This document shows, in pieces, positions 13,936 through 41,881 of a DNA stretch of 64,000 bases. Every line of letters starts with the position of its first letter. Within the stretch, counting starts at the first letter, position 1. The translations under genes were made by a program, and so were the position numbers. This DNA comes from Phaeosaccion multiseriatum (taxonomy: Eukaryota; Protista; Ochrophyta, other classes). Below the pieces are notes generated by a model. The model saw only the letters and a list, made by a program, of their open reading frames with translations. It had not been told where the DNA came from and ran no database searches. The stretch lies in contig OZ218950.1 in the NCBI GenBank assembly GCA_965112735.1, positions 2,418,001-2,482,000 on the forward strand, given 5' to 3'.

Positions 13936-16900
13936 CGCACAGCAACGGCTCCTGCTCCTCTATCACCCCCTCGTGAGCAGCTGCCCCTTCGCCGTGGCTC
14001 TGCCTTCCCTTTCCCCCACCGGTAACGAGGTCGCAATGCCGCTGCTCCACCACCAGTGTGGCGAGGCCCTCTGCGGTGGGGTTCTCAAGCACCTCCGCCA
14101 GCGGCAGCTCCTCCTGCAGCTCAAACTGGTCCTGGAGCGTGTTGACCAGCTGCACCACGGCCAGAGAGTCCATACCCAACTCCAGGAAGGAGACAGTACT
14201 GCTGATACTCGTATCCGTACCAACAGCTTGGAGCTGGGCCTCGAGGTCCGCCTCCTCCAGAGGAGAGACAGCCCGCCCTTCTCTCATCTGCTGCTGCTGC
14301 TGCCTCTCCATCTGGAAAATACGTGCAATCTCCAGGCAGGCATCCACCGCCTTCTCATGCACGTCTTCTTCGCTCTCGATCACCACTCGACCCCTGTGCG
14401 GAGAGTCCTTCGGCTGATAGCGACCAGAGTACATGAAAACCAACGGCGGCCTTGCAGTTGTCTTCTTCCCTTCAGTTCTGCCTTCACCCGCACTTCCCCC
14501 CGGTATCGCCGCTGCCAATGCTCCCCAATTACTCAAGATAACGTGAGCATTCGTTCCGCCCACGCCATACGAGTGCACCGCGGCGATGAGCGTGCCTGCC
14601 CGAGCTCGCGCTCCACCTCCATCCTCGCTGCTGCTGCTGCCCTTCCAGTCCACAGGAGTCTTGAAAGTAGTGAGCTGCGAGCAGAGGGCTATGCGCGACT
14701 GCTCAATGTAGCCGAGCTCTGGGGACAAGTGCTCTCCATGCAGATTGGGAGGTGTCTGCTGGTGCTGAAGGACCAAAATGGCCTTAATGAGCTGCCCCAG
14801 TCCCGACGCACCCTCCATATGCCCCACACTGGTCTTCACCGCACCCACGCAGAGTGGATATATCCGCTCCCCGGTATCGCGTTGCTCCTCCTCAGCGTAG
14901 ACCCCGTGCAGAGCGCCCATCTCAATGCTGTCGCCCAGCACCGTGCCCGTCCCGTGTGCCTCCACGTATCCCACCTCACACGCTCGACGACTTGCGTCTC
15001 TCAATGCCATACTCATCACCTCTCGCTGTGCCACGCCATTGGGGGCCGTCATCTGAGCGCTTTGCCCGTTGTGGTTGACTGCGCATCCTTCAATGACTGC
15101 CAGGATGTTGTCATGGTCCGCTTCCGCGTCCGAGAGACGCTTCAAAACGAGAGCTCCGCAGCCTTCCGCTCGGACATAACCATCAGCTCCGGCAGCAAAG
15201 GACGCCGTGCGACTGAGATGGATAGGAATCGATGGGGGGAAGACAAAAGGAAGCAATGAGAGAGAGAGTCGTCAAAAGCGGTGCCGCAACCAAGAAATCA
15301 ATCATATGCGCCACAAAGCTTCCGCTTACCCTTTCTTAGAGAGCAGACCAGCCTTCCGGAGGGTAACAAAGCCTTGGGGGTGAAGAAGTAAGTTCACCCC
15401 CCCCACCACGGCTGTCTTGCACTTGCCCAGTCTGAGCTTGTCGCACGCGGCCTCCAGCGCAACAAGCGAGCTCGAGCACGCAGTGTCCAGCGTTAAGCTT
15501 GGCCCCACGAGTCCAAGCCGATTGCTGATGCGTCCGGCCACCAGAGAGGTACTCGTTCCCCCGAGGGTGTACGCATCAGGCTTCTGTGTTCTGTCCGTCT
15601 GTACGGTCGCCCAGTCACTGCCGGATAGACCGATGAAGACGCCCGTGTCTGAACCCTTCATGGCATACTTGTCCTGTCTTTTGCCGTCATACTCCTCCCT
15701 CCCGGCGTCCCCTCGCGAAAAGCCTGCAAAGCCCGCCTCTGCAAGTGCTTCGTACGCTACTTGGAGCATCAACCGCTGATTCGGGTCCATGGTGCTGGCC
15801 TCGCGGGACGAAATGCCAAAGAGTTCATTATCGAAGCTCTCCAATTCATCATCCAAAAAGCCCCCGTGCAGCCCTAAAGTCTCCTCGCCCCACCCCTCGA
15901 AGGGGAGCCGAGTGGCACAGTCCACTCCATCGACAAGATTCCCCCAGAAAGCGGCAGGGTTGTCTGCGCCGCCCGGGAAGCGACAAGCCATGCCCACCAC
16001 CGCCAGCCCACGACGGCGGCGCTGACTCTCTGCCGTGAGCTCTCCTCGCGCTTGGTGGAGAGACTGCTCCTCTTCGAGCTCCGCATAGACTCGCTGCTGC
16101 GGTGCCCCTTCTTTGCTGCCATCATGCCCAGCAACTCCGTGAGACAGTACTTCATCTTCGACCCATTCCGCCAATGCTGCCACCGTTGGATACGAGAAGA
16201 GTACGTCGCTGGTCACATTCACTCCAAAGCGAGACTGCAGCCGGCCGCGCAGCTCCGCCGTTGCCAAAGAGTCAAGGCCTGCCTCCATCAGCGGGGTGGT
16301 GTCGGTCAGCTCTTCGGCACCCTCCCCAATCAGCTCCTTGGCTATATCCATCACCGCAAGGCTCACCATACGTTTCCGGTCTTCGGCGGACAGCTCCAAC
16401 AGCTCCTCGCGCACTTCATTGTTGAGTGCGGTGTTGCTGGACGCGCCTGCTGCTGTTGAGACAAGCCCTGACAGAAGGAACGAGCCGCGGGACGCACCCA
16501 AGCTGTCTGCAAACTTGCTCCAGTCCATGCCAGGCAGAACGGCATAATCGCCCAAATGCGCTGACGACATCGCAGCGGCATCTAAAGCAGCCATGCCCAG
16601 CTCAGCTGACACCGTGCCCACACCAGCCAGCTCCAACTGTTTTTGAACGATATCGAGCTGGGCGGCCATACCAACGTCAGCCCACGGCCCCCACTGCAAT
16701 GACGTCCCTGCGAGCCCGAGGTGTCGCCTGTGCCGCATCAGCCCGTCCACAGCCGCATTCCCTGCAGCGTAGTTGGCCTGTCCAGCGTTACCCAGTACTC
16801 CGGCCATGGATGTGAAGCAAAAGAAGAAGTCAAGGCCAGGAGCGCGCCCATCCTCCTTCGCCCAAGCCAACGAAAGCTCGTGCAAGTTTATCGCCCCCTG

Positions 16901-19900
16901 CACCTTCGGTCGGAAGACGTTCGTCACGCTCTCCACCGTTTGCTCTCCCAGCAGCTTATCATCCAGCACCCCGGCAGCATGCACCACACCGCGAACAGGG
17001 GGTAGCAGAGGCAGCACGCCCCCCAGGCATGTCCGAAGTGCCTCAGCATCAGCAACATCACAAGCAGGAGTATGGGTGGTCAGCTCCACCTTATTCTGAA
17101 GCTGCTGCCACTGTTCTGTCATGCTTTCGGCGACCTTCCCACTCCTCGACAGCAGCACAAGGTGACGAGCGCCCCTCGACGCGAGATGCTGGGCCGTCAC
17201 GAGGCCGAGAGCCCCCAGACCGCCGCTGATGACGTACGTGCCATCCGACACGACTGGCACACCGTACGAGGGGTTGGTCAGCACCACCTTGCCGATGTGC
17301 TTCGCTTGGCTCATGTATAGCATGGCCTTCTGAGTATCCTCCCTCATGTCAAAGGTTATGGTCGGTAACGGCTTCACATTGCCAGACATGCACTCTTTAG
17401 CCAGATGCTGCAGCTCGTCGCTTATCCAGCCCGGCTCACCCGCCGAAAAGTCGAAGTCGATAATGGCGTCCACGGCGACGAGGTTGTACCTCACATCGGA
17501 CCGGGCGGTGTGCATCTGCTCGTGACTCCATACACCTCTCTTCCCAATCTCCACGAATGTACCACCCTCTGTCAGCATGGCAAGCGAGAAGGGAATGTAG
17601 TCTTCACTCAGTGAGTTGAGCACCACGTCCACCTTCATCTCACTCATGGACTGCTTGAACGCCTCCGCGTCTCTCGATGACGCAATGTGCTGCACTCCCA
17701 AGCTCCGGAGGAAATCATGCTTCACAGCAGCACCGGCAGTAGCGTACACGTCTGCGCCCACCCGCTGAGCATACTGCACGGCGGCAAGGCCCACACCACC
17801 CGACGCGGCGTGAATCAACACCTTCTCTCCAGCCCTAAGGTCGTGGAAGGCCTTCGCTACCGTCAAGCACACGGTGGGAAGTGCAGCGGCCTGCTCGAAG
17901 CTCAGCACCGCCGGCATCACGGCCAGACACACATCACTCGTCGTCACATGACTGCGCAAACATCCCGCATCGCCAAAGCCAAACACTGCATCGCCGACAC
18001 GGAAGCGCGAGCTTCCTCCCACACTGATCACCTGCCCGGCGAACTCGGAGCAGGGATCTCCAGGATCGCCAGGGTACATGTCCAGCACATTCAGCACGTC
18101 CCGGAAGTTAAGGCCAACAGCCCTTACTGCCACCTTTACGGAGCTGCCAGCTGGGTCACGGGGTTGATGTTTGCCATGGTCCACATCATCACGAAGGGCG
18201 AAAGCACCGGCAATGCTGCCTCTTGCCTTCAAATCTAGTGAGAAGGGAAGCTGCAGGGGCTGACGTACAAGCTGAGGAGCCCAGCACTGTCCGTCGCGTA
18301 CCCACACATCTTCTGTGGCAGTAGGGAAGGCCAAGCCTAAGGCAAGCTCGCTGTCTTGGGCCTTCTTGCCGCTGAGGTCCACCACGCCGATCTGCAGGGA
18401 GGGGTGCTCCACTCTCGCAGTCCGCACCAGCCCGGTCACCCAGCTGTCACGCCAGTCCTCGCCGCTTTGGACGCCTCTAGTCAAAACCGTCAGCGGCACC
18501 CTTGATGCAGTGGACAGGCTCCTGAGTAGAGCCATCAGGGCGTAGGCCGCTCGTGCTTGCGTGCTTCCTTCTGCGTCTTCTTCGCCAGCTCCGGGTACCA
18601 GCACGTACAATACGCGAGCCCACTCGTCCTGTCCAAGAAAAAGAGTACCATCATCCCAGGAGGCGTCCTTCCGCCCATATCGAGTGTGTACGTAAACGTT
18701 CTCCGGAACACAGCGCAGCACTGCAGCAATGATTGAAATCTCTTCCTCCCTTTCGTCCTGTGGAATAACCACGAGCCACTGACGCGCCGCCGCCTCAGCA
18801 GGGTCAGTATCACTACCAGGGGCCTCCTCTTGTGTAGACGACTCAGCGGTCTGCCATTCAAGCGTGTACATCGCCCGATGAAGAGGATTGGGGCGCGCAA
18901 AGCCTCTCGCCCGCTGCACGCGGAAGCCCCGCATCTCCACGAGCACCTCTTTGCTGTCGAAGTCTGCAATGCGGATGTCAAACTTGACGCTGTCCACCAC
19001 TGACTGGCCCTCACTCAGCTTCGTGTGCACCCACACGTTCTTTCCCGCCATGGAGGCGGAAACAACCACTTCGTCAAAGCCTGCAGGTAGGAATGGAGAT
19101 TCCCCCCCCTCCTTGAGCAGCTTCCTTGGCAGCGCTTGCATGATGGTATGAGTAGCATTGTCCAGCACCGCGGGGTGCAGAGCAAAGCCCTTCATCTCCC
19201 ACGGCTCGCACAGCTCCTCATCCAGGGCACACACGATCGACAGAACCTCTCCGTCCCCTCCGTACATGTGGCGGGTCCGCTGAAAGCGGGGGCCGTACTG
19301 GAAGCCGGCGTCTGCGAAAGACTTGTAGAGCTCACTCGATACGTCCTGCTCGCCAACTCTAGCTCGAATGGATTCCACGTGCAAATAAGCTCGCGCCGTG
19401 CTACGCTCCATGACAGACACGTACTTCATTCTTGCCGTGGTGCCCTTGTCGCCCGTGGCACCTCCGAAGAACTGCATGCTTCCATCTGCCGCGTGAAGGG
19501 CACTCATCCCGGCACAGACCATTGTATGGCGGCTTTGAGCTTGGTCCATGCCCGCCTGTTGGAAACCCTCAATCTCCAGTGGGACCACAAGGCTGGCTCC
19601 GTGCAGGACTACCTGCTGCTCCACTCCGAGCTGTCTTCCTCCTAGAGCAGCCACGACGCCCACTTCAATGTACGTCACCCCCGGAATGATCACCATATTG
19701 TTGACGGCATGGTCCTTGAGAAGGTCCTTGAGATGAGGGGAGAAGGGGCTGGGGAGGCGCATTCCGTCTCTCTCCTGGACCATCTCACCACTGGGCATAA
19801 AAGCAAGCGGAGGCTTGTACCAAGGAAATGATCGGCGAGTCGGATAAAGCTCAAGATGCTCCGGCCCCGCTACTCTGCCCAGGGCTGCTCCAAACGAATC

Positions 19901-22900
19901 CTCGGAGTTCTGCCCTCGCGAGAGGGAGGAGATCCACGCCAGCCCCTCGCGACGCTCGCACTTGGCTCCCATGCTGCTCAGCACAGGGTTGGGGCCCACC
20001 TCAACGATGCTCAGGTCAGCCCCCCTCCCGTCTCCCATCCAGTGCTCCACCAGCGTGTGGATGCCTTCTGCGAACAGCACTGGCGACAGCATGTGCTGCA
20101 CCCAATACGTCACCTGCGTCACCTCCTCCCCTCTCACCACCTCACCTGTCACGTTGGACACCAGGGGAATGCGTGGGGCGCTGAACGACACCTGCCTCAG
20201 AACCTCCTCCAGCGCACGTACAGCGGGCTGCATCAGAGGAGAGTGGAAGGCGTGCGACACCTCCAGGGCCTTGCAGCCCACCCCATCTGCCGTGAGCCTC
20301 TCCACCACCTTGTCCATAGCACTGCGCGCTCCAGAGATCACGCTCGCGCTCGGTCCATTCGACGACGCCAGCACCACCTCGCTTGCCAGCCCCGCAGCTT
20401 CGATGCTTGCCAAAGTCGCCCCCTTGCCTGCCCTCACTGCGAACATCACTCCATCGCCCTCGGGGCAGGCCTGCATGGCGGCTCCTCTCTTGGCGGACAG
20501 CATCAGCCCGTCCTCCAGCGACATGACGCCGGCTACGCACGCCGCCACTACCTCGCCCAGGCTGTGGCCCATCACCATGAAGGGCTCCACGCCCTCCGAC
20601 TTCCACCGCTCACACAGGGCGTACTCCAGCACAAACAGGCACGGCTGGCAGTAGCGTGTCTCCTTCAGCAGCGCTTGTGCAGTCTCCTCTCCCTCAGCTG
20701 TAGGGTACATGAGCTCCACCGCAGACTTGTCCAGCCAGGCCCGCTCCATGAGCAGCCTACTGCACCGCTGCACGCACTCGCGGAACACGCCCTCCTTCTC
20801 GTACAGCTCTCTGCCCATGCCCACGTACTGCGAACCCTGTCCGGTGAACAAAAACGTCACCGGTGAACTCTTCTTGCCTTGCTGTCCATCCAGCTGCAGC
20901 AAGGCTTCGCTCTCGCTCTCCTCTACCATCGTCTGTCTGAAACTGCTGAGCACCGCATGGACGTTGGCTCCTCCCGCGCCGAAGGAGCTGACAGCAGCAG
21001 TGCGCCTCTCTCCGTCCCTGGCACTCAGTGGCACCATCGTAGACGGCAAATTCACCGGAAAGCCATCCAAACGAAGCTCCGGATTGAGCTTCCTCATGTG
21101 GAGATTGGGGGGAGCAGATCCGTGCTGAAGGACCAGCAGAGCTTTGATGAGGCCAGCGATTCCGGACGCACCCTCTAGATGCCCGATGTTGGTCTTCACC
21201 GCCCCAACCACCAGGGGCCGAGCTTCCTCGCGGCCATGGCCATACACGGCCCTCAAAGCACTCATCTCGATGGGGTCGCCGAGAGAAGTACCGGTGCCGT
21301 GCGCCTCCACGTAATCAACCTCATGACCGTTCAAGCCGGCCTCCACCAGTGCCTGCTCCATCAGACGCTGCTGAGCAGATGGGCTCGGGGCAGTGTAGCG
21401 CAAACTTCTCCCGTTGTGGTTCGCAGCGCAGCCATTGACGACAGCGAGGATGTGGTCGCCATCGGCCTGTGCATCGTCCAGTCGCTTCAGCACCACGGCG
21501 CCGCAACCCTCACCTCGAACATAACCGTTGGCCGCAGCGTCGAACGTCTTGCAGCGCCTGACCATGAGGATTTGAGGGTTTGCAAAAGTGAAGAACAGAG
21601 AAGAGGAAACCCATCAGCAACAGGGGCCTTTCAGACAGCTTGCGCCTTTTGATCTTGCTCTCATACCGGCCCCAAGAACAAGCTCCCACCCACACAAAAG
21701 AGACACGCACTTACCAGTCAAGACTCAGGAAACCTCCTTCGGCGAGGGTCTCGAACGTCTGTGTACCCAGCAGCAAGTTGACGCCTCCCACCAAGGCGAT
21801 GTCACACTTGCCCAGTCGCAAGCTGCTGCAGGCCCCCTCCAGTGCCACCAAAGACGACGAGCACGCCGTGTCGACACTCATGCTCGGCCCTCCGAGGCCC
21901 AGCACGTAAGACATCCGATTTGCCGGACTCGCATTGGACATGCCCATGACGGAGTACGCACCCTTGTTCGCATCGTCAACCACTGAGCCCCACTCGCTGC
22001 CGGACATACCCACGAACACACCGGTGTTGCTGCCATGTAGTGTATCCTTGCGGTATCCCGCCCTGTGCAGCGCCTCGTACCCCACCTCCAGCATGACGCG
22101 CTGATGAGGGTCCATGGCACCCGCTTCGGCCGCAGAGATGCCGAAGAAGGTGTTGTCAAAAGCCTCCACTCCATCAATAAAGCCCCCTTGCCACTGCTTC
22201 TGACCCTCATCGGCCCAGCGACCAACAGGGCTGGCTCCAATACAGTCTGTCCCTGCACAGAGCATAGCCCAGAAGTCCTCGGGGTTCTTAACCCCTCCAG
22301 GGAAGCGACAGGCGATCCCCACGACGGCCAACGGCGCCCTTGAGTCAGTGCGGTGCGCTTCAGCCTCGATCGCCGCAGAGCGACTGCTAGAGGGTTCCTC
22401 TACCTCGCCAAGCACCTCCGCTTCGATCCACACTGCCAGCGCCGCTACCGTGGGATAAGCGAAGAGCACGTCAGTGGTCACAACAGCCCCGAAGCGAGCC
22501 TGTAGCCGGCCGCGCAGCTCCACTGTTGACAAAGAGTCAAGACCTGCTTCCATCAAAGGCGTGTTCGCGTCCAGCTCTTCGGCACCCTCTCCAAGTAGAT
22601 CCTTGGCGATATCAAGCACCGCCAATCGCACTGATTGCTGTCGCTCGCCAGGGGGCAGTCTCAAGAGCACCTCGCGCACTTCATTGTTTAGTGCGGTGTT
22701 GCTGGACGCGCCTGCTGCTGTTGAGACAAGCCCTGACAGCAGGAACGAGCCGCGGGACGCACCCAAGCTGTCTGCAAACTTGCTCCAGTCCATGCCAGGC
22801 AGAACGGCATAATCGCCCAAATGCGCTGACGACATCGCAGTGGCATCTAAGGCAGCCATGCCCAGCTCAGCTGACACCGTGCCCACACCAGCCAGCTCCA

Positions 22901-25900
22901 ACTGTTTTTGAACGATATCGAGCTGGGCGGCCATACCCACGTCAGCCCACGGCCCCCACTGCAATGACGTCCCTGCGAGCCCGAGGTGTCGCCTGTGCCG
23001 CATCAGCCCGTCCACAGCCGCATTCGCTGCAGCGTAGTTGGCCTGTCCAGCGTTGCCCAGTACTCCGGCCATGGATGTGAAGCAAAAGAAGAAGTCAAGG
23101 CCAGGAGCGCGCCCATCCTCCTTCGCCCAAGCCAACGAAAGCTCGTGCAAGTTTATCGCCCCCTGCACCTTCGGTCGGAAGACGTTCGTCACGCTCTCCA
23201 CCGTTTGCTCTCCCAGCAGCTTATCATCCAGCACCCCGGCAGCATGCACCACACCGCGCACAGGGGGTAGCAGAGGCAGCACGCCCCCCAGGCATGTCCG
23301 AAGTGCCTCAGCATCAGCAACATCACAAGTAGAAGTATGGGTGGTCAGCTCCACCTTATTCTGAAGCTGCTGCCACTGTTCTGTCATGCTTTCGGCGACC
23401 TTCCCACTCCTCGACAGCAGCACAAGGTGACGAGCGCCCCTCGACGCGAGGTGCTGGGCCGTCACGAGGCCGAGAGCCCCCAGACCGCCGCTGATGACGT
23501 ACGTGCCATCGGACACCACTTGCACACCGTACGAGGGGTTGGTCAGCACCACCTTGCCGATGTGCTTCGCTTGGCTCATGTATAGCATGGCCTTCTGAGT
23601 ATCCTCCCTCATGTCAAAGGGTATGGTCGGTAACGGCTTCACATTGCCAGACATGCACTCTTTAGCCAGATGCTGCAGCTCGTCGCTTATCCAGCCCGGC
23701 TCACCCGCCGAAAAGTCGAAGTCGATAATGGCGTCCACGGCGACGAGGTTGTACCTCACATCGGACCGGGCGGTGTGCATCTGCTCGTGACTCCATACAC
23801 CTCTCTTCCCAATCTCCACGAATCTGCCTCCCTCTGTCAGCATGTCCAATGAGAAGGGAATGTAATCCTCGCTCAGTGAGTTGAGCACCACATCCACCTT
23901 CATCTCACCCATGGACTGCTTGAATGCCTCTGCGTCTCTTGAAGACGCAATGTGCTGCACTCCCAAGCTCCGGAGGAAGTCATGCTTCACAGCAGCACCG
24001 GCAGTAGCGTACACCTCCGCGCCCACCCGCTGAGCATACTGCACGGCGGCAAGGCCCACACCGCCCGATGCGGCATGAATCAACACCTTCTCTCCAGCCT
24101 TGAGGTCGTGGAAGGCCTTCGCTACCGTCAAGCACACGGTGGGAAGTGCAGCGGCCTGCTCGAAGCTCAGCACGGCCGGCATCACGGCCAGACACACATC
24201 ACTCGTCGTCACATGACTGCGCAAACATCCCGCATCGCCAAAGCCAAACACTGCATCGCCGACACGGAAGCGCGAACTTCCTCCCACACTGATCACCTGC
24301 CCGGCGAACTCGGAGCAGGGATCTCCAGGATCGCCAGGGTACATGTCCAGCACATTCAGCACGTCCCGGAAGTTAAGGCCAACAGCCCTTACTGCCACCT
24401 TTACGGAGCTGCCAGCTGGGTCACGGGGTTGATGTTTGCCATGGTCCACATCATCACGAAGGGCGAAAGCACCGGCAATGCTGCCTCTTGCCTTCAAATC
24501 TAGTGAGAAGGGAAGCTGCAGGGGCTGACGTACAAGCTGAGGAGCCCAGCACTGTCCGTCGCGTACCCACACATCTTCTGTGGCAGTAGGGAAGGCCAAG
24601 CCTAAGGCAAGCTCGCTGTCTTGGGCCTTCTTGCCGCTGAGGTCCACCACGCCGATCTGCAGGGAGGGGTGCTCCACTCTCGCAGTCCGCACCAGCCCGG
24701 TCACCCAGCTGTCACGCCAGTCCTCGCCGCTTTGGACGCCTCTAGTCAAAACCGTCAGCGGCACCCTTGATGCAGTACACAGGCTCCTGAGTAGAGCCAT
24801 CAGGGCGTAGGCCGCTCGTGCTTGCGTGCTTCCTTCTGCGTCTTCTTCGCCAGCTCCGGGTATCAGCACGTACAAGACGCGAGCCCACTCGTCCTCTCCA
24901 AAAAGAAGAGTACCATCATCCCAGGAGGCGTCCATCCTCCCAAATCGAGTGTGTACGTAAACGTTCTCCGGAACACAGCGCCGCACTGCAGCAATGATTG
25001 CACTCTCTCCCTGCCTCTCGTCCTGTGGAATGACCACGAGCCACTTCTGACGCGTCGCCTCAGTATCATGATGAGGTCGCTGTGCAGGCACGGCTGCCTC
25101 AGTGGGCTGCCATTCCAGCGTGTACACCACGCGACGAAGCGGATTGGAGTGCGCAAATCCTCTCGCCCTCTGCACACGGAAGCCTTGCATGTCGACAAGA
25201 ACCTGCCTGCTCTCAAAGTCGGCGACCTTGATTTGAAACTTGATGCAGTTGCCCCCTGTCTCCACTTCAGCGAGCGTCGTGTGCACCCATACCTTTGCTC
25301 CTGTTATGCCACCAAAGACGTCCACCTCGTCGAAGCCTACAGGCAGGAATGGAGCACCGCCCCTCGTTCCCAACAACTGGCGTGGTATTGCTTGCAGAAC
25401 CGAGTGAGTCGCATTGTCGAGCACCGCAGGGTGCAGAGCAAAGCCCGTCGCCTCCCAAGGCTCACACAGTTCCGAGTCGAGAGCGCGCACGACCGATAGC
25501 ACCTCTCCGTCATTGGCGAACATCTGTACATTCCGCTCAAAGCGAGGGCCATAGTTGAAGTTGGCATCCGCCATTGCCTCGTACAGGCCATGGGCCAAGT
25601 CCACAGTCCCTACCCGCCCCTTGATTCCCTCTATATCGAGCATGTCACGCGGCTCGGTTCGCTCCATGACAGACACGTGCTCCATCCTCGCGGTCGTTCC
25701 CTTGTCACCCATAGCACCTCCGAAAAACTGCATACTTCCATCTCTCGCGTGCAGAGCACTCAAGCCGTAACATACAATGGTATTGCGGCTTTGAGCCTGG
25801 TCCGTGCCGGCCTGTTGGAAACCCTCAATCTCCAGTGGAACAACAAAGCTGGCTCCGCGCAGGACTATCTGCTGCTCCACCCCGAGCTGTCTTCCTCCTA

Positions 25901-28900
25901 GAGCAGCCACGACGCCCACTTCAATGTACGTTACCCCCGGAATGATCACCACATTGTTGACGGCATGGTCCTTGAGAAGGTCCTTGAGGTGAGGGGAGAA
26001 GGGGCAACAGAGCCGCATTCCGTCTCCCTCTTGGACCACCTCGCCACTGGGCATGAACGCCAGTGGAGGCCTGAACCAACGAAATGCTTGGCGTGTGGGG
26101 TACAATGCGCCACGCTCTGACCCGCCGTCCTTCTGAAGAGCATCATTGAAGCCGACGCCCTCTCCGTCGGTGTGCGCGGCCGTACTCCCAGCTCTGGGAC
26201 CGGATAGCACGGCGTGAGCATTGGTTCCGCCGGCACCGAAAGAGCTCACGGCAGCAACGAGCACTCCTGTCCGCCCGCCTTGACCCACGGGCTCCATGGT
26301 CACAGGCAGCGTCACAGGGACGCCGGCGAGCTCCAGCTCGGGGTTGATGTCCTTCAAATGCAGGTTCGGCGGGGCGACGCGGTGCTGCAGCACCAATACG
26401 GTCTTGATGAGGCCTGCAATACCTGCGGCACCCTCCAGATGGCCGATGTTGGCCTTCAGCGCACCTACCACCAAGGCATTTACCTCGCTGCGGTCCGGTC
26501 GGCAGTACACGGCCTTGAGGGCGCTCATCTCGATGGGGTCTCCCAGCGCCGTTCCCGTGCCGTGCGCCTCCACGAAGCTCACATCTGCGGGGTCGCTTCC
26601 CGCCTCTGCCAGAGCGGCAGACAGAAGCTGCTGCTGAGCAAGAGGACTGGGTGCCGTCAGACGAGCGCTGGCCCCATTGTGGTTGACCGCACAGCCCTCG
26701 ATTACCGCTAGCACAGCGTCCCCGCTGGCCATAGCATCATCAAAGCGCTTCAGCACAATGGCACCACATCCTTCGCCTCTGACATAACCATTTGCAGATG
26801 CGTCAAACGTCTTGCAGCGCCTGTCGCAAGGTAGAGAAATATAGGTGGGGTGTGAGTGGGGTGCAACGGAAGGTCTTGTTTGACTGTAGAGAAGACGCCT
26901 AAGAATGAGCTGCAAGAGCAGCAATAGGATAAATGAATCAGACTTCACAGACCAGAGTGTCCAGAGCAACTTACCAGTCGGGGGAGAGGAAGGTCCCCGC
27001 AATCAAGGACTGAAAGGTGCTCTTCCCGAGCAGCAGGTTCACGCCACCGACCACCGCCGAGTCGCACTTGCCCAGGCGGAGGTTGCTGCAGGCAGCGTCC
27101 AGAGCCACCAGGGACGACGAGCATGCTGTCTGCAGCAACGCGCTGGGGCCGCAGAGACCCAGAGTGTAGGATACGCGATTGGCAATGTTCGAAGCCGTCA
27201 GGCCCATTCCGCCATAGGCACTCTGAGCAGCGGTATCTCCTGCCACGAAGCCCCAGTCCGTGTCCGACAAGCCCACGAACACGCCGGTGTTGCTGCCCCG
27301 CAGGCTGCTCTTGCTGTGGCCCGCGAGATGGAGGGCCTCGAAGGCCACCTCCAGCATGAGGCGCTGATTGGGGTCCATTGCCTCTGCCTCGGCAGCACTG
27401 ATGCCAAAGAAGGCATTGTCGAACATCTCCACGCCCTCGATGAACCCTCCCTGTAGCTGCAGCTCGCCCGTCTTACTCTCCCACCTGTCGTGTGGCGCTG
27501 CCGTAATGCAGTCTCTGCCCTCGCACATCATCGACCAGAACTGCTCCGGGCTATTGGCTCCACCGGGGAGGCGACACGCCATACTCACTACAGCGATGGG
27601 GGCTCGAGAGTCCGAGGACAAGTGCTGTCCTGTCAGCACCTTTTTAGCCCCCTCTACATCATCCAGTACCTCGAGAATCTGGGCCTCGAGCCACGCGCCC
27701 ATTGCAGACACCGATGGATGCGAGAAGAAGGCGCCATTCGACACGGGGACACCACACCAGGCCTCGATTCGCTTGCGAAACTCCACGGAAGCCATCGAAT
27801 CGAGTCCGGCCTCCATCAAGGGCATCGTTGCTGCCAAGGTGAAGTCCTCGCCAACGCACTCGACCACCATTTCCGTCAGGACTTGCTCGATCCTCTCCCG
27901 CCGTGCTGACTCCGGCAAGAGCAGGAGCTCCTCCCGCACCTCGGCATTGACGCTGTAGCCCTTCGCCGCCTCACCACTGTCTTCGCGGTCCGTCAAGTGC
28001 CCGAGGAAATCGCTGTGCACAGGGGCCAAGCTCGCTCGAAATCTGCCCCACCTCATGGCCGGCATGACGGCCACCTCCTGCACGTTGGCTTGCGCTTGAC
28101 ATGCAAGGACGGCATCCAGTGCCTTCATACCCAGCGCCAGTGAGATCAGGCCCACTCCAGCCATCTCGAAAAGTCTCTGTAGCGTCGTAGACCTCGCTGC
28201 CATGCCCGCCTCACCAAAGGGCCCCCACTGAATGCTGGTGCCCGCCAGCTTGAGCTGCTGGCGGCGATAACGCATCAGACCATCGAGCGCGGAGTTGGCT
28301 GCGGCATAATTCGTCTGCCCGATGTTGCCAAGTGTCCCAGCCGTAGAGGAATACGATATGAAGAAATCCAAGTTCTCTCCCCTCTCGGCCCACTCAAGCG
28401 ACAGCTCATGTAGATTCCAAGCCCCCTGAATCTTTGGTGCGAACACTTTCCGCACGCTCTGATCGGTCTGCCCAGCCAACTGGCCGTCATTTAGAACCCC
28501 CGCTGCGTGAATCACACCCCGAACGTGAGGCAGACCCACCAAGGCCGTTGCTACAGCATCTCGAAGCTGGCCCATGTTGGACACATCGCAGGCCACAGCC
28601 ACAGCGGTGACATTTTCTATGCTCTGCAGGGCCTGCCACAGCTCTGAAGCTTCCTCTGCCGCCCGGCCGCTTCGAGAAAGGAGGAGCAGGTGTCGAGCGC
28701 CCTGGGAGACCAAGTGATTCGCCGTCGCCAGACCCAGCCCCCCCAGACCACCGCTGATCAGGTACGTCCCATCCTCCCTGTACGCGAAGCGACCGACTCC
28801 TGCCGATGTCAGATGGAGTGTGCTGGGCACCAGCCTCGGAGCGAGGATCTCACACCCTCGAACCAGCAGGTCCACGCCTCGCGCTCCGTCGTGAGCTTCT

Positions 28901-31900
28901 GCAGCCAGCGTCACAGCCTGGGAGACAGTCTGGGCTTCCATCTCCTCTGCTCTAGTTCGAGCATCCTCAGACTGTGGAGACATGGCACACTCAAGGTCCA
29001 CGTGGTTCACGGAGAGGTCGCCCGGCTCCAGGCGTATGCTTCTCACCAGCCCCACCACCCAGCTGTCCTGCCAACCAGCACCGCTGTACACTCCCGTTGT
29101 GACCACAGTGACGGGCATCATTGCCTCGTCCCCGCCTAAGCTCTGTACAGTTTGTACAAAGTGGATTGCCCCATCGGTAGGAGAGCCCGTTGCTGACGTC
29201 AAGTAGAAGAGATGGGCCCCACGGGGCTGCGCGTCTGAACCGACCGCCTCCACCACGTGCACATCCACACCATTTGCTGTCGCCGCGCTTTGGACAGCTT
29301 CCAAGGCTCTGTGGCTGCTCGATGCGTGCTGCCCTTCGGCTGCCTCGGGAATCACGACGAACCACGGAAGGCTGCCGGTCAGCAAAGCCTGCTGCGAAGC
29401 CGTGGGCACCTCCACCGCCTCCCACTCAACAACATAAAGCGGGCCCTGCTCCGCTTCACTCCACGTCTGAGGTGGTGCTGTGACTCGCGCTGTGTACCAA
29501 GGAAAGGCCTTGCGCGTTGGGAAGAGGATGCTCTCCTTGCCCTTCCTCTCTTGCCGGTGCACTGTGCTCACAGCCGCTCCAAACGACTCTTCAGAGCTCT
29601 TCCCGCGCATTAGAGAGGGTATCCACACCAGCCCCTCGCGACGCTCGCACTTGGCTCCCATGCTGCTCAGCACAGGGTTGGGGCCCACCTCAACGATGCT
29701 CAGGTCAGCCCCCCTCCCGTCTCCCATCCAGTGCTTCACCAGCGTGTGGATGCCTTCTGCGAACAGCACTGGAGACAGCATGTGTTGCACCCAATACGCT
29801 ACCTGCGTCACTTCCTCAGCCTTCACCACCTCGCCTGTCACGTTGGACACCAGAGGGATGCGTGGGGCGCTGAGTGAAACCTGCTTCAGAACCTCCTCCA
29901 GCGCACGTACAGCGGGCTCCATCAGAGGAGAGTGGAAGGCGTGCGACACCTCCAGGGCCTTGCAGCCCACCCCATCTGCCGTGAGCCTCTCCACCACCTT
30001 GTCCACAGCACTGCGCGCTCCAGAGATCACGCTCGCGCTAGGTCCATTCGACGACGCCAGAACCACTCCGCCTGCCACCCCCGCAGCGTCAATGCTTGCC
30101 AAGGTCACAGCCTTGCCTGCCCTCACTGCGAACATCACTCCATCCCCCTTGGGGCAGGCCTGCATGGCGGCTCCTCTCTTGGCGGATAGCATCAGCCCGT
30201 CCTCCAGCGACATGACGCCGGCCACGCACGCCGCGACCACCTGGCCCAGACTGTGCCCCATCACCATCACCGGCTCCACGCCCTCCGACTTCCACAGCTC
30301 ACACAGGGCGTACTCCAGCACAAACAGGCATGGCTGGCAGTAGCGTGTCTCCTTCAGCAGCGCTTGTGCAGTCTCCTCCTCCTCCTGCTCCTCCCCGTCC
30401 TCAGCGACCGCTGGGTACAAGAGCTCCACCACAGACTTGTCCAGCCAGTCCCGCTCCATGAGCAGCCTGCTGCACCGCTGCACGCACTCGCGGAACACGC
30501 CCTCCTTCTTGTAGAGCTCCCTGCCCATGCCCACGTACTGCGAACCCTGCCCGGTGAACAAGAACGCCACTGGCGTTTGTGCTTGATGAACATGAACAGA
30601 TGGTGCCAAACCGCCTTTCCGTTTCTTCCCGCAGCTCCTCAGCAGCACGTGTGCGTTCGCTCCTCCCGCCCCGAACGAGCTCACCCCCACCATCACGTCT
30701 CCCTCGTCCTCCAGCTGCACCATTGCCGACGGGAGCTGCACGTGGAAGCCGTCCATGTCCAGCTCCGGGTTGATGCTCTCGAGGTGGAGGTTGGCGGGCA
30801 CAGCGCGGTGCTGCAGCATCAAGACGCCCTTGATGATCCCGGCAATGCCCGCCGCACCCTCCAGATGGCCAATATTGGTCTTGACCGCACCCACTACCAG
30901 CGGGAAAGAGTCGTCACGGTTCTTCCCGTACGTGGCCCTGAGAGCGCTCATCTCGATGGGGTCGCCGAGCGAGGTGCCCGTGCCGTGTGCCTCCACGATG
31001 CGTACCTCGGAGCCCTCTCGACCGGCCTCACGCAGCGTCGCCTCGATGAGTCTCTGCTGGGCGGCGGGGCTGGGGGCAGTGAGGCGGGCACTGGTTCCGT
31101 TGTGGTTCACGGCACAGCCCTCAATCACAGCGAGGACGGTGTCTCCGGCAGCGAGGGCGTCGTCCAAAAGTTTCAGCACAACGGCACCGCATCCTTCGCC
31201 ACGCACATATCCGTTTGCCGACGCGTCGAACGTCTTGCAGCGTCTGAGAAGGGCATGCGAAGTGTGGGGTGGGGTAAGGTAAGCTGACTTGGTAGGGCAC
31301 TCAAGTCGTTCTCAATGTGCGACTTTCCAGAGAGCCGATGGCCAAAGGGAGAAGAGAGGTCAACACAACAGGAATGGACGCACTGCACACTCACGCGCAC
31401 GTACCCGTCGGGCGATAAGAAACCACTTCCCTTCAGCCTTTCGAAGCTCTGCGTGCCCAGCAACAGATTCACTCCGCCCACCACTGCTGCGTCGCACTTG
31501 CCCATGCGTAAGCTGCTGCAAGCGCTGTCCAGGGCCACCAGAGAGGACGAGCACGCCGTGTCAGTGGTCATGGACGGGCCCTGCAGTCCGAGCGTGTACG
31601 ACAGACGATTGGACACGCTTGCCCCTGCTGCGCCCATGGTGCTATACACGCCTGTCGAGGATGAGCCTTCCCCGAGTGCTCCCCAGTCACTGCCGCTCAT
31701 GCCCACGAACACTCCGGTCTGACTGCCACCCAGGCTTTGCTTGGTATAGCCCGCAGTCACAAGCGCCTCCAGTCCTACCTCCAGCATCACCCGCTGGTGT
31801 GGGTCCATGGCAGAAGCCTCAGGACTGGATATGCCGAACACAGATGAATCGAACATTTCCACGCCGTCGATGAAGCTTCCTTGCCACTGCTGCTCATCCT

Positions 31901-34900
31901 CCTCCTTGCTCGCCCAGCGGTCGAGCGGAGCAGGCTGGACACAGTCCTTGCCATTGCTAAGCATGGCCCAAAACTCCTCTGGGCTGTTCGAACCACCTGG
32001 CAAGCGGCACGCCATGCCCACAATAGCCAGGGGGGCAGTCATGCTACCTCCAGCCGGTTCAGCATTCCTCTCCTCATATTCACCCTCCTCAGCCCCCAAG
32101 ACCAAGCCCTCGAGCCACACAGTCAGCGCTGCCACTGAGGGGTGACTGAAGAGCACATCGTTGGGGACCGGCACGCCGAAGCGAGCTTGGAGTCGACTCC
32201 GAAGCTCCACCGTAGACATGGAGTCCAGCCCAGCCTCCATCAAAGGTCTCAAAGCGTCGAGCTCGATGCCTGCTTCACCAATGCATGCTTTTACCATCTC
32301 CATGATTAAAGCCTGCAGCATGGGCTTTCGCTCTCCCTCCGACAGCTTCAGTAGGTCCCGCTTAACCTCGGTCGTCACACTGTTGCTAGCCTTGTTCTGC
32401 GGTCCCACCATCGAAGCCTCTCTAACGAGAGCATCGAGCATCCCGGGGTTGCCAGCAGCCTCAGAGAAGGCGGGCCAGTCCATGCCAGGCAGAACCAAGA
32501 GCTCGCGCGATGCCGCAGATGGAGCTGACACGCCGGCATCAAGCGCCGCCATACCCAATGCCTTACTGATGAGCCCAACGCCGGCCATCTCCAGACTGGC
32601 CATGGCAACTTCGGACCGAGCGGCCATGCCAGCTTCGCCCCACGGCCCCCATTGGAGGGCCACAGAGCTGGAGTGACCGAGGCGCCGACGATGCTGCATC
32701 AGCCCGTCCACAGCAGCGTTGGCTGCAGCATAGTTGGCCTGGCCTGCATTGCCTAACACACCTGCCATGGATGTGTAGGACACAAAGAAGTCCAAGGGCC
32801 AGGCCATCTGCAGCGACAGCTCGTGCAGATTCCAAGCGCCCTCCACCTTCGGCTTGAAGACCTCTTCGATACTCTCGGGCGTCTGGTCCACCAGCAAGCG
32901 ATCGTCGAGCACGCCAGCAGCGTGGATGACACCTCGTACGGGCGGCATGCTACTGAGCGCCGTGCCTAGAGCCTTCTCAAGCGACTGCGCGCTAGACACG
33001 TCGCACGATACAGCCTTGGTGCTCACCCCGCCGGCCACGGTGAGAAGCTCCTCCCACAGCGCCTGGGAGTCCGCCTTGACTTTTCCCCCTCGCGAGAGCA
33101 GTACAAGATGGCGAGCTCCTTTATCAGCCAAATGCTTCGCAGTCGCCAGCCCCAGCGCCCCCAGCCCACCGCTGATAACGTAAGTCCCGTCTCGCACGAC
33201 GGGAATGCCACACTCAGGGCTACTGAGCACAACCTTCCCAATGTGCTTCGCAGTTCTGAGGAAGTTCATTGCCTCCGCAAGCTCATCCCTCAAGTCGAAT
33301 GTCTTCACTGGTAGCGCCTCGGCCCTGCCCGCCTCGCTGTCCGCTGTCAGCTGCTCCAGCCCAGCGAACGCCCAGCCCTGCTTCTCGGCCTTGAAGTCGT
33401 CTGCTATCATGGAGTCCAGTGCAATCAGCTCGTACAGCACGTCGGGCCTGGCAGCCTTCATCGCCTCCCTGGTCCACACGCCTCGCTTGCCGATCTCCAT
33501 GAAGCGCCCGTTCTTCGTCAGCAGCTCCAGAGAGTAAGGGATGAAGTTGTCCGACAGGCAATTGAGCACCACATCCACCTTCGCAGCTCCCATGGAAGCA
33601 TTGAAGGCCTCCGGATCTCGCGACGACGCAATGTGCTTCACGCCCATGCCTCGCAAGTAGGCGTGCTTCTCCTCGGATCCAGCAGTGGCGTAGATCTCCG
33701 CTCCGATGCGCTGAGCAATCTGCACGGCCACCAGACCCACTCCACCTGACGCGGCATGGATGAGCACCTTCTCACCACGCTTCAAGCCAGCGAGTTGCTC
33801 AAAGGCGTGCACCACTGTGAGCCACGCGATAGGCAGCGCTGCCATGTCCTCGAAGGTCCTGTTGGAAGGCATGTGGGCCAGACACACGTCACTTGTCGTT
33901 ACGTGGGAGCAGAAGCAGCCCTTGTCCGGAAACCCGTAGACCTTGTCTCCCACTTGAAAGCGCGAGTTTCGCGATGCTCGAGTGACCACCCCCGATAGCT
34001 CGATGCCAGGCTGTCCAGGGTCGCCAGGGTACAGGTCGAGCACATTCAGCACGTCTCTGAAGTTGAGCCCCACCGCCTTGACACAAATTTCAATCTCCCC
34101 GTCCTGCAAGGCAGCGTCTCTCTCGGAAGGGAGTACGTCCCTGCGCTTCAAGCCGCCTTCGATGCTTCCCCTCACCATGAGATCGAAGGAGAATGGGAGG
34201 TGCGTGTCTGTTGAGGGCGTCAGGTGAGGCGTGAGATATCGTCCGTCTCGCACCCACACGTCCTGCCCCAGTGACGCGATGGCCCAGCACTTGGGAAGGT
34301 CCACGCTGCCCACGTCCACCACCGTGATGGCCAGTGAAGGGTGCTCAGCACGAGCGGTTCGAACCATGCCGTACACCCAGTGATGCCTCCACCCCTCGCC
34401 GCCGCTCAGCATGTCCTGCACCAGCACCATCAAAGGAGCTGGCCTTCGTAAAAGCTGCTGTAGCAACAAGAGGAGTGTGTGTGCCTCTTGGCTGGGGCTC
34501 TGCTGCTTGCCGCCGAACAAGGTGCACACCACACAGCCCCATCCTGCTGGCGCTTCTGAAGCGAGGGTGGAGTCGTCGATGCTCTTGACCTCCCTCTCCG
34601 TCAGTGTCACAGAGATGGGCAAGCTCTCTTTCGCTGCCTTGTCCAAGCTGCCACGAGCGCCGCTGGTGAGGAGCAGCCAAGCTTCCTCTCGCTCTTCCAC
34701 GTCACCTCTGCTGCGGGAGATGGAATCGTTGGGCAGCCACTCTAGAGAATACAGCGCTCGGCTGACGGGGTTGGTGCGGGAGAAGCCTCGGGCCAGCTGC
34801 ATCCGGAAGCGGTTAAGCCGCACGAGCACTTGCTTCGTTTCGAAGTGTGCTATCACGATGTCGTACTCGATCGCAAGAGCTTGAGAGTCCACCTCCTTCA

Positions 34901-37900
34901 CCACCGCATGAACCCACACCTTCTCGCTCGTGATGGCCCCTCGCACAAGCACCTCTTCGCAGCCGGTGGGTAAGAAGACGGCGGCAAAGGCCTTGCTCGT
35001 CAGCTCCTCAGGCAAGAGCGCCAACATCGTGTGCGCGGCATTATCCAACACGGCAGGGTGGAGGTAGAAGCCGTTGATCTCCCACTCCGCCGATAGGCTG
35101 CCATCCATTGCCGCCGCAACCGACAAGGCCTGTCCACTGGCTGCGAAAAGGTGCTGCGTTCGGACAAAGCTGGCACCGTAGTCATAACCAGCACTGGCAA
35201 GCTTGAGGTAGAGCCCCTCGGCGATGTCCTCGTCCCCCACCGCGGCTCTCACCCGCGCCACGTCCAATGTCTCTGCCTCCGTCCTTGTGCACAATTGAAG
35301 GGAAGTCGCCTTCGCCACCGTCTCTCCAGCCTTGCCGTGGGGACCTCCGATAAACTGCACGCTGCCGCGGGCAGTGACGAGGGCACTGACTTCAGAAGCG
35401 ACCACAGTGGTGGAGCCCTCCACCGCACGGTCCACATCGGGGGCACGAGCGCCTGCAATTTCCAGTGGAGACATGAAGACCAGGCCCTTCAGGACCACTT
35501 GCCTCTCGCCAGGGAAAGGCTTGCCCTTCAGCAAGGCGGCAAGGCCAATCTCGATGTACCCCATGCCCGGCATGAGCACCACTCCTCCCACCGCGTGATC
35601 TTGCAGCAAGCCCTTGAGCTGAGGGGTGAAGCAGCATGAGAGGAGTGTTCCTCCCTTCTTCTCGACGACGCCGCCGCTTGGTACCATCGCATGCGCCTGC
35701 TGCTCGAACCAAGGGAGGGCACGACGGGTGGGGAACAAAGGAGTGGGCTTCCCCAGCACTGCCGCCACTGCTCTGCCGAACGAGGCAGTGTCGCTCCCCT
35801 CCCGCCGCATGGAGGGCTGCCACATCACGTCCGATCTCTCTCCCTCGCATTGCTGCGCCATGTTGATCAGCACAGAGCTGGGCCCAATCTCTACCACTCG
35901 TACACCTTCAGGCCTCTCCCGGAGTAGCGTGGTGATACTCTCCGCGAACAGCACCGGCGATAGCATGTGTTGCACCCAGTACGCTACCTGCGTCACCTCC
36001 TCCGCCTTGACCACCTCACCCGTCACGTTGGACACCAGGGGAATGCGTGGGGCGCTGAGTGACACCTCACTTAGAGCCTCCTCCAGAGAACGCACAGCGG
36101 GCTGCATTAGAGGAGAGTGGAAGGCGTGCGACACCTCCAGGGCCTTGCAGCCCACCCCATCTGCCGTGAGCTTCTCCACCACCTTGTCCACAGCGCTGCT
36201 CGCTCCAGAGATCACGCTCGCGCTCGGTCCATTCGACGACGCCAGCACCACCTCCCCTGCCCCCCCCGCAGCGTCGATGCTTGCCAAAGTCGCCTCCTTG
36301 CCTGCCCTCACTGCGAACATCACTCCCTCGCCCTCGGGGCAGGCCTGCATGGCGGCTCCTCTCGTGGCGGACAGCATCAGTCCGTCCTCCAGCGACATGA
36401 CGCCGGCCACGCACGCCGCCACTACCTCGCCCAGGCTGTGGCCCATCACCATGGACGGCTCCACGCCCTCCGACTTCCACAGCTCACAGAGGGCGTACTC
36501 CAGCACAAACAGGCATGGCTGGCAGTAGCGTGTCTCCTTCAGCAGCGCTTGTACACTTTCCCTTTCCTCGGCAGCAGGATATATGAGCTCCACCACAGAC
36601 TTGTCTAGCCAGGCCTGGTCCTGCAGGAGGCCATCGCACCGACGAACAGCTTCACGAAAGACCTCACGCTGTTGAGGCAGCGAACGAGAGACACGCAAAG
36701 CAGAGACAAGAGAGAAAAGCATATGAGAGTAGGTGGCCGAGGTGATGCGAAGCGACGGAGAAGACAAGAGGAGCACTGACAGATACAGAGGTTCAAATGA
36801 GCAAGCGAACTCACCTTATCGTAGAGCTCCTTGCCCATGCCGGGGTACTGGGAGCCTTGCCCCGTGAAGAGAAAGGCGACGGGAGATGCGGCCACCTCCG
36901 TCTTCCTCCTCGTCGGTGTCTTCGAACCCTCCCCCTCCACACTCGGCGCAGGGTTGCTCAGCACCACATGGGCGTTGGTGCCTCCTGCTCCGAACGAGCT
37001 TACTCCTGCGTACAAGGGCTCGCTGCTGCCATTGGGGTGTCCCTCGCCACTCAAGGGGGTTAGTCTGGACGACGGGAAGGCCACCGCAAATCCATCAATG
37101 CCCAGCTGAGGATTGAGCGTGCCGAGGTGCAGATTGGCCGGAACAGCTCTGTGCTGAAGAGCGATGACGGTCTTGATGACTCCCGCGATGCCTGCGGCGC
37201 CCTCCAAGTGACCAATGTTAGTCTTGACCGCTCCCACCAGGAGTGGGAAAGAGCTCTCCCGCCCTTCTCCGTAGGCGGCTTTGAGAGCGCTCATCTCGAT
37301 GGGGTCGCCAAGAGCCGTGCCGGTGCCGTGCGCCTCCACGAAGTGAACTTCCCTGCCCGCTACACCCGCCTCCTCCAAGGCTGCCTGCATCAGCGTCTGC
37401 TGCGCGTCTGGACTGGGTGCTGTGAGCCGCATAGAGCGCCCATTGTGGTTCACGGAGCTTCCCTGCACGACGGCGAGGATGTTGTCTCCGCTGCGCTCCG
37501 CGTCGTCAAGCCGCTTCAGCACAACGGCGCCGCAACCCTCTCCTCGGACGTAGCCGTTGGCCGATGCGTCGAACGTCTTGCAACGCCTGAGAAAGGCATG
37601 GGAATGGCGGGGTTGGAAGCGGGGGAGAGGGATTGAGCTTCATGGTCTGCCCATCAACACACTACAACTCTACTACTTCTGCACGAACTCGATGCTCTCC
37701 AAGGCAAGCTCCCCCATTCGGCCGTACGTACCAGTCCTTGGACAAAAAACCTCCCTTGTCGAGCTGTTCGAAGGAACGGGAGCCGAGCAGCAGGTTCACT
37801 CCTCCCACAACCGCAGCATCGCACGTGCCGAAGCGAAGATAGCGACAAGCCGTGTCCAAGGCAACGAGGGAGGAAGAGCAAAGCGTATCAACCGATATGC

Positions 37901-40900: not shown

Positions 40901-41881
40901 ACAACTGAAAGGGGTACATCGACCCACCTGTTTTGCTCTCAAGAAGAGCTTCCTTGTCAAGCCCTGCGTCGCGAAAGGTCTCGTAGGCCACCTCCAACAT
41001 GACTGCGGGTGTTCAGGAAACAGCAAAGCAGGTGAGACCTTGTTGGTTTTACTGAAGGCGAAACAACTCCGAGTCACACAGGGAGAGGATTGTGATGCTT
41101 GCTTTGCTTACCTCGCTGCTGAGGGTCCATTGCGGATGCCTCCGGGTCAGAGATGTTGAAGAAGACGTTATCGAACAGCTCTACGTCGGGGAGGAAGCCT
41201 CCCCGCGTGGGGTAACCGCTTTCTCCACGCTTGAGCTTGTCCAAGGCCGCAGGCTCCCATCTGTGAGAGAGACGCGCGCGAACGCGCGAGGAGTGTTTTG
41301 GGAGGCGCCAGCCAGAAGGAGACAAAGATAAGGGTTAGAGCCATGAGCTCTTGACCGTGTGTACAGTGATTCTTCGCCCTCATACCGTCCGTCCACTACC
41401 ATCCCAACTCCCTCCCACCCAACCACTCCAGCAAGATGTGCTGCGGTGGCAGGAGGGGGCGGGGGCAAAATGCTAAGCGCCGTGATGCACGCTGCCCATC
41501 ATCTCCAAGGTTCCGTCGCCCAGACCCAGCCAACCACCGCCCACTCACGCACCTATCTGTGGGCATGTCTGTGATGCCGCTGCCCTCCCTGCAGAGCAGG
41601 TCCCACAGCTCAGGAACAGAGTTGGCACCTCCAGGGAAGCGGCAGGCCATTCCAACAATGGCAATGTCGCCACGACGATGGCCGCCTTTCTCGCTTCTCG
41701 TTGGTCCGCTGCCCATGTTTGGGTGCGTGGGGGAGGGAGGCGCCCTTCGAACCTCGTCCTCTTTGCCTGCTGGCACTGGTGCTGCTGGTGCTGCGGGTGT
41801 CTCCGCCGCCGGTGCCTCCCCCGCACCTGTTGCTGCACCCTGAGGCTGATCCTGCACCGGCTCCTTGCCGGGCCCGGGCAT
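11325..41881 (-). CDS. Giant six-module type I PKS with a Pls/PosA-like transmembrane terminal domain (copy A); ~9,285 aa if read through, 9,038 aa to the internal TGA at 12068-12066
   Basis: Exons 41881-41553, 41260-41112, 41002-40928, 40771-40424, 39883-39374, 38851-37732, 37586-36815, 36668-31405, 31243-26975, 26820-21715, 21557-15330, 15212-12646, 12445-11325; all GT-AG, phases sum to 27,858 nt. Contains 6 KS, 3 AT (GHSLG/HAFH), 3 DH, 3 ER, 4 KR, 6 ACP (GxDS). Start codon is inferred: the upstream acceptor region differs by 7 nt between copies, so it is probably UTR. Confidence 0.93.
14045..16010 (-). other. PKS module 6: KS-(AT remnant)-ACP
   Basis: DTACSSS, HGTGT, KTSVGH; PLVFMYSG resembles the AT-start motif FLFTGQG; ACP FLELGMDSLAVVQL. 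Confidence 0.85.
16150..22340 (-). other. PKS module 5: KS-AT-DH-ER-KR-ACP
   Basis: DTACSSS; GHSLG, HAFH; HAVNNMVIIP; HAASGGVG; LDD, YAAGN; GLDSL. Confidence 0.9.
22410..27605 (-). other. PKS module 4: KS-DH-ER-KR-ACP (AT-less)
   Basis: QTACSSS; the KS end (NAHAVLS) is joined by ~30 aa to the linker LYPTRQAFRW, then DH HAVNNVVIIP / HPAVLDNATH; ER; KR with LDD; GLDSL. Confidence 0.9.
27670..32040 (-). other. PKS module 3: KS-AT-KR-ACP (no DH or ER)
   Basis: DTACSSS; GHSLGQ, HAFH; the post-AT linker LFPTRKAFPWY runs straight into the pseudo-KR LYVVEW; KR GGLGGLG, LND, YAAAN; GLDSM. Confidence 0.9.
32100..38355 (-). other. PKS module 2: KS-AT-DH-ER-KR-ACP
   Basis: DTLCSSS; GQGSQ, GHSLG, HAFH; HAVGGVVLMP, HPAVLDNAAH; HAASGGVG; GGLGALG, LDD, YAAAN; GLDSM. 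Confidence 0.9.
38430..41670 (-). other. PKS module 1 (loading): KS(Cys->Ser)-ACP, no AT
   Basis: GPSQTINTASSSSLVAV; HGTGT and KTNLGH retained; ACP MEAGMDSLALMELRQRL. Coordinates approximate. Confidence 0.85.
38975..39335. repeat. (GAGT)n microsatellite in intron 5 of PKS copy A
   Basis: Tandem GAGT array; the intron is 522 nt here versus 377 nt in copy B. Confidence 0.9.

Follow-up and report, generated by a model that had tools for sequence, protein, structure and literature searches.

A phase-2 intron at one codon of five ketosynthase domains in a giant modular polyketide synthase gene of Phaeosaccion multiseriatum

A modular type I PKS gene

The DNA considered here (the window) is a 64,000-nucleotide (nt) stretch of the Phaeosaccion multiseriatum genome, contig OZ218950.1, positions 2,418,001–2,482,000; positions below are counted from its first base. 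Its minus strand carries a modular type I polyketide synthase (PKS) gene, copy A, which runs from about 41880 to 12623 or further. Within a stretch of some 25 kb of this gene there are six introns, and five of these lie at one codon, and in one phase, of successive ketosynthase (KS) domains. All gene features described below are on the minus strand.

In the open reading frame (ORF) list the gene appears as very long open frames that succeed one another between about 38876 and 12623, and a tblastn map places six KS in series along copy A. Per-exon Pfam searches and tblastn together find several KS-(AT)-(DH-ER)-KR-ACP sets following one another in a single reading frame, the arrangement of a modular type I PKS (AT stands for acyltransferase, DH for dehydratase, ER for enoylreductase, KR for ketoreductase, and ACP for acyl carrier protein). 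Pfam was run on each exon singly, and joining was limited to the three letters of each split codon, assembled by script.

An exon at 37732–38876 encodes an ACP and the N-terminal half (N-half) of KS2, with its catalytic Cys present (Pfam). Beyond it are four blocks bounded by the shared introns, referred to here as cassettes. Cassette 1 (31405–37586), made up of two exons of 772 and 5264 nt, encodes the C-terminal half (C-half) of KS2, AT, DH, ER, KR, ACP, and the N-half of KS3 (Pfam, tblastn). Cassette 2 (26975–31243; 4269 nt) is a hydroxyl-leaving module, with the KS3 C-half, AT, KR, ACP, and KS4 N-half (Pfam, tblastn); cassette 3 (21715–26820; 5106 nt) has the KS4 C-half, DH, ER, KR, ACP, and KS5 N-half, and no AT (Pfam); and cassette 4 (15330–21557; 6228 nt) has the KS5 C-half, AT, DH, ER, KR, ACP, and KS6 N-half (Pfam, tblastn). 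The last exon seen (12623–15212) contains the KS6 C-half and an ACP, followed by a membrane end domain of the Pls/PosA type that is represented by its first half (Pfam, TIGR02353). The initial annotation had described each block between shared introns as a KS C-half, processing domains, an ACP, and the next KS N-half with its Cys; the Pfam assignments agree, with the qualification that 26820–21715 lacks an AT.

KS2 through KS6 all have the active site of a condensing KS, with Cys in the motif (D/Q)T(A/L)CSSS, followed by HGTGT and GH(L/M)EG. Because both cassette 3 and the KS6 module are without an AT, the gene is a mixed modular PKS rather than a strictly cis-AT one. As far as copy A is seen it ends, at 12623–13700, in the Pls/PosA-type membrane-embedded domain (TIGR02353, profile positions 58–370 of 695), with no thioesterase; the remainder of this domain should be encoded by further exons below 12623.

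Five introns at one codon

The five shared introns are all phase-2 GT-AG introns. Those of KS2 (37587–37731; 145 nt, ahead of RCKTFD), KS4 (26821–26974; 154 nt), and KS5 (21558–21714; 157 nt) each split a Trp codon as TG|G, and that of the divergent KS6 (15213–15329; 117 nt) splits a Gly codon as GG|T; these four were delimited from the sequence and by script. The KS3 intron (31244–31404; 161 nt) splits Gly as GG|A, and is also present in a contig of sequencing run X3. The sixth intron of the stretch (36669–36814), GT-AG and phase 0, falls where the AT of the first extending module begins, and is found in that module only.

All five KS introns begin with GTA(A/C)G and end with CAG, preceded by pyrimidine-rich tracts; the 5′ splice sites, GTAAGT or GTACGT, are close to consensus. 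In each case the split falls after the second base of the codon following D or K in LS(K/P/L)D|W/G or LSKK|G, with RCKTFD next (RTASF in KS6). The intron's distance to an upstream VGGVNLLL anchor does not vary among the five KS, nor does its distance to a downstream GYVR; it is therefore the same codon that is split each time. These positions are exactly, to the base, those in the initial annotation. That five introns should share codon and phase by chance cannot be.

Once the introns are removed, KS2–KS5 read LS(K/P/L)D(W/G)-RCKTFDA(S/A)ANGYVRGEG across the junction, and KS6 reads LSKKG-RTASFAAGADGYVRAEG. Excision thus rebuilds SPD(G/W)RCKTFD, a motif of bacterial type, without adding or dropping a residue. 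Retention would shift the frame for four of the five KS introns and for the extra intron, and the 117-nt intron would add three in-frame stops. In their ends, their pyrimidine-rich 3′ tracts, and a frame and motif that are rebuilt on removal and broken on retention, the five KS introns have the features of spliceosomal GT-AG introns. The split codon itself is Trp (TG|G) in three of the five KS (at 37732, 26975, and 21715); in the bacterial and Chrysoparadoxa KS examined, this residue is mostly Gly (DGRCK).

The four blocks, of 772+5264, 4269, 5106, and 6228 nt, are free of stops in the expected frame, starting one base into each block (by script), and their lengths are divisible by three, as had been noted at the outset. 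This divisibility is a consequence of equal intron phase and an open frame, and does not constitute independent evidence.

On the 252-position PF00109 model the intron maps to position 222, and it lies about 49 residues past the active-site Cys and about 85 before the first His. It therefore parts the KS active site, leaving the Cys in one half and the two His residues in the other. Since it falls within the KS, the exon borders are not at the borders of folding units, as classical exon shuffling would have them.

The shared intron is not a feature of every KS in the gene, being restricted to KS2–KS6. The 5′ region of copy A, about 41880–38880, is intron-dense, and includes KS1 within the interval 39375–41880. 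KS1 is uninterrupted across the shared site (LLSDKCMVFDAAANGYVRA), and has an intron of its own (40421–39883; 539 nt, phase 1) 13 codons downstream of it. This KS1 intron is filled by GGGAGA-type repeats (40330–40030), related to the (CCCT) microsatellite described below. In both copies of the gene, Ser replaces the active-site Cys of KS1 (INTASSSSL; 40473–40772 and 2066–2365), HGTGT and GH are kept, and no AT was found between KS1 and the first ACP. From its sequence and its position at the start of the protein, KS1 looks like a non-condensing, loading-type KS.

Descent of the introns

If the five introns have a common origin, little of it is visible in their own sequences, which cannot be aligned beyond the splice signals. 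Silent sites in the surrounding exons put this in context: at four-fold degenerate sites KS2–KS5 are 33–51% identical, against 28–30% expected from composition, with protein identities of 61–72%. The module duplications are old. With silent sites this near to saturation, intron sequence evolving neutrally would be expected to be unalignable, and common descent is not contradicted.

Separate trees were constructed for the C-halves and N-halves of KS domains, including the window's six KS, one algal relative, and, as outgroup, 16 metagenome KS taken to be bacterial because their layout is free of introns. The algal relative, a Chrysoparadoxa australica PKS contig (L082) that is 58–64% identical to a KS5 tblastn probe, carries KS-DH-KR-ACP in one frame, with the site intact (SPDGRCATFD) and no intron. 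The algal KS form one clade apart from the metagenome KS, with support of 100/99 for the C-halves and, for the N-halves, 95/88 without KS1 or 87/87 with it. The intron-bearing KS2–KS6 cluster together in both the C-half tree (89/87) and the N-half tree (81/64, with KS2–KS5 at 95/83); the intron-free KS1 and Chrysoparadoxa KS are outside this group in both. With the outgroup rooting, the KS2–KS6 group can be explained by a single gain followed by module duplication, in agreement with the initial proposal that gain of the intron came before multiplication of the modules. The five introns are positionally homologous, and were probably gained once on the KS2–KS6 stem before the modules were duplicated.

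Introns could conceivably have entered each KS on separate occasions at a favored target sequence, or have been generated by a mobile intron-producing element. The exon context, GAC(T/G)G|(G/A)CG(C/T)TGCAAGACGTT, is highly conserved and might serve as such a target, but it is unlike the usual AG|G proto-splice site, and the motif is also present, with no intron in it, in KS1 and the Chrysoparadoxa KS. Introns born of a transposon-like (“introner”-type) element would be expected to resemble one another and to have copies elsewhere; these five are dissimilar, and no further copies of them were found within the window. The trees fit a single gain. A parallel origin consequently seems highly improbable.

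Relatives with the same intron were sought in several ways. An exon-sized protein search returned only matches that are bacterial by name or nameless, at 29–55% identity. A metagenome scan gave 80 loci at 50–59% identity, with the KS uninterrupted in all 16 of those whose flanks were read. A wide protein search yielded mostly giant multi-KS proteins, the two fetched being bacterial, with matches in Chromera and Salpingoeca also present. A fragment-sized search had a single algal match, the intron-free Chrysoparadoxa sequence, and the exon-boundary signature was found in none of its top 120 matches. No closer relative turned up in the protein databases. The giant PKS of Chromera velia, Cvel_6161 (P0209, P0392), has transcript models of 6550 and 6584 residues, a 34-residue difference that is less than a whole module.

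Some contigs from sequencing runs share the exon flank at 26975 with copy A and continue with other sequence after GTA or GTAAGT. Compared with the KS4 intron (26821–26974), runs X1, X2, and X4 have the exon flanks in common and diverge inside the intron, with loose ends at 26914 and 26972 and a single joint, from 26823 to 26969. The joint was considered as a splice junction and rejected: GTAAGT and CAG are both retained, and it probably represents an allele or paralogue with a different intron. Judging by their sequences, the divergent contigs hint at additional copies or allelic variants that also have an intron there, or at a near-identical paralogue whose intron differs.

Recombination within the gene and its partial copy

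Cassettes 3 and 4 share a 3.7-kb gene-conversion tract (22421–26102, pairing with 19846–16156) that is 89.7% identical overall and 97–100% identical over 25027–22777, the latter part spanning the end of DH, ER, and KR; both of its ends are within exons. The ATs of cassettes 1, 2, and 4 are 86–99% identical over approximately 0.7–0.9 kb, again with ends inside exons. In cassette 2 this tract occupies 29650–30546, and is 86–99% identical to the cassette 4 AT and about 92% identical to that of cassette 1. Sequencing runs cover the AT stretch 5–10 times more deeply, and it is therefore repeated in the genome. The AT of cassette 3 has been removed by a clean deletion of about 900 nt within an exon (26065–26157 compared with 19959–20859 of cassette 4), and the ATs of its neighbors are near-identical.

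The 5′ end of the PKS gene is itself tandemly duplicated, with a period of about 38.3–38.5 kb. The 5′ end of copy B (1–3863) is 94–95% identical to 42319–38266; it leaves the window in the KS2 N-half, some 530 nt before the KS2 intron site, and continues past the window start. A perfect-looking microsatellite, (CCCT) × 526 on the plus strand (7267–9374; 2.1 kb, 97% matches), separates copy A's last recognized exon from the beginning of copy B.

These tracts bear on the suggestion in the initial annotation that recombination within introns could swap modules while rebuilding a complete KS. In its evolutionary form, the introns would have acted as neutral crossover sites, and PKS evolution in this lineage would have had the exon cassette as its true unit. 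The cassette does resemble AT-X-ACP-KS, the “updated” module that has been put forward for the evolution of bacterial PKS (PMC6718629), and copies A and B, at 94–95% identity over the 5′ end, are closely similar. But every detectable conversion or deletion tract, whether in the ATs, along the 3.7 kb of DH-ER-KR, or at the deleted AT, ends inside an exon at domain borders, and none at an intron; the KS halves beside the introns are the least homogenized parts of the gene, at 57–79% nucleotide identity. An apparent affinity between the KS5 and KS6 C-halves vanished in a global alignment, and the affinities of N-halves and C-halves show no clear discordance. Nor is the periodicity informative about breakpoints, as any module-length duplication will copy one intron per module. 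Only about 3% of the region is intron, and what is found is an absence of support for intronic recombination rather than its disproof. A history of crossovers at the introns is unlikely.

Splicing and possible module skipping

At the RNA level, the initial annotation proposed that splicing could programme chain length and oxidation state. In such an assembly line phase 2-2 cassettes would be skipped, joining a KS N-half to a later C-half and giving shorter or differently reduced products. All junctions are in phase 2, making every cassette symmetric, and 9 of the 10 possible skip joins, assembled by script, leave an open frame in which the split codon reads Gly, Trp, or Cys. Of the joins that had been proposed, 31405 to 26820 yields GGG (Gly) and 26975 to 21557 yields TGG (Trp). 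With 61–72% identity among the KS2–KS5 halves, hybrid domains are conceivable.

The symmetry of the cassettes therefore stands, but not every skip product is open: the third proposed join, 37732 to 31243, creates a TGA stop. Every join onto the last exon (15212) puts Cys in place of the KS Gly or Trp. A hybrid KS would also have its Cys and its two His residues from different domains, diverged by 30–40%. The splice sites (GTAAGT or GTACGT, with pyrimidine tracts and CAG) look strong and constitutive. Where introns are short and exons long, splice sites pair across the intron, and introns of 117–161 nt between exons of 4.3–6.2 kb have that architecture. In unicellular eukaryotes, the main form of alternative splicing is intron retention, not exon skipping, and retention would here break the frame. 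Programmed skipping is accordingly a very doubtful explanation of this gene. A literature search yielded no account of a KS intron that recurs periodically, nor of modules being skipped by splicing.

Taken more broadly, the idea would be that the introns splitting the KS serve as junctions for the alga or in its evolution, with modules removed or swapped by occasional exon skipping or intronic crossover to give hybrid KS. If this were true, one gene family could sample products of differing chain length and reduction, with DG|RCK as a naturally occurring fusion point tolerated within the KS. The chances of it seem slight.

A probable relic of module duplication

The periodic intron is better read as a fossil of module duplication than as a device. 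One spliceosomal intron would have been gained, once, in the KS of an ancestral and otherwise intron-poor PKS module, between the Cys-bearing and the His-His-bearing halves. Each tandem duplication of a module-length segment would then have copied the intron along with it, and with codon and phase the same throughout, every stretch between introns would automatically be 2-2 symmetric and a multiple of three. The introns would be ordinary and constitutively spliced. The single gain and the constitutive splicing are what we infer. We give this reading, of single descent and constitutive splicing, a probability of about 80%.

Several points weigh against it. Support for the KS2–KS6 group is moderate, and the trees do not settle the branching order within KS2–KS5. 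Algal sampling is thin, with one non-bacterial relative having genomic DNA in the comparison. An intron gained after the duplications and then spread by gene conversion between KS copies would give the same present picture. The four sequencing runs that contain the stretch include no RNA; their contigs are short, come from one sample, and include intron sequence.

Under duplication of a module that already had its intron, the intron is ordinary and inherited, and the setting in which it is found is new and tidy. This intron dates the multiplication of modules relative to the intron gain, and implies that the modules multiplied inside a eukaryote and were not imported ready-made. The periodic intron is also a reliable landmark for annotating giant algal PKS genes: to ORF-based gene callers, a KS N-half ends one ORF and a C-half starts the next, and such programs may split the gene or call the KS truncated. 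If hybrid KS joined at this site were ever demonstrated to work, the fusion point would be of interest to PKS engineers.

Comparison with known systems

By the classical rules for symmetric exons, tandem domain duplication passes on intron positions. The present gene is like such tandem-duplicated domains in having a homologous codon and phase in each unit, and units that could in principle be added or removed in frame. It differs in that the borders cut through the KS fold, and that one exon may include up to seven domains in 4–6 kb.

Among algal multimodular type I PKS, giant spliced genes, established module duplication, and loss of AT from some modules have been reported (Shelest et al., 2015; PMC4661987), all of which copy A has in common with them. 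In the portions of that paper reached by a term search, introns appear only as features of gene models or as proof of eukaryotic origin, and a periodic KS intron is not described. The PKZILLA-1 and PKZILLA-2 genes of Prymnesium parvum have 17 and 12 exons for dozens of modules, and RNA-seq and proteomics support a single major transcript from each gene (10.1101/2024.01.29.577497). They too are giant microalgal modular PKS with canonical GT-AG introns, but do not have the rhythm of one intron per KS, and are from a haptophyte rather than a stramenopile.

In bacterial modular PKS, the recombination hot spots are the KS-AT and post-AT linkers, and module excision or insertion works with a junction near the KS (PMC6718629). 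Like the updated bacterial module, the exon cassette is a unit extending from just after (here, from inside) one KS to the next. Its boundary is about 200 residues earlier, within the KS, and there is no sign that recombination has used it: the recombination breakpoints of copy A match the bacterial linker hot spots (PMC6718629), not the introns.

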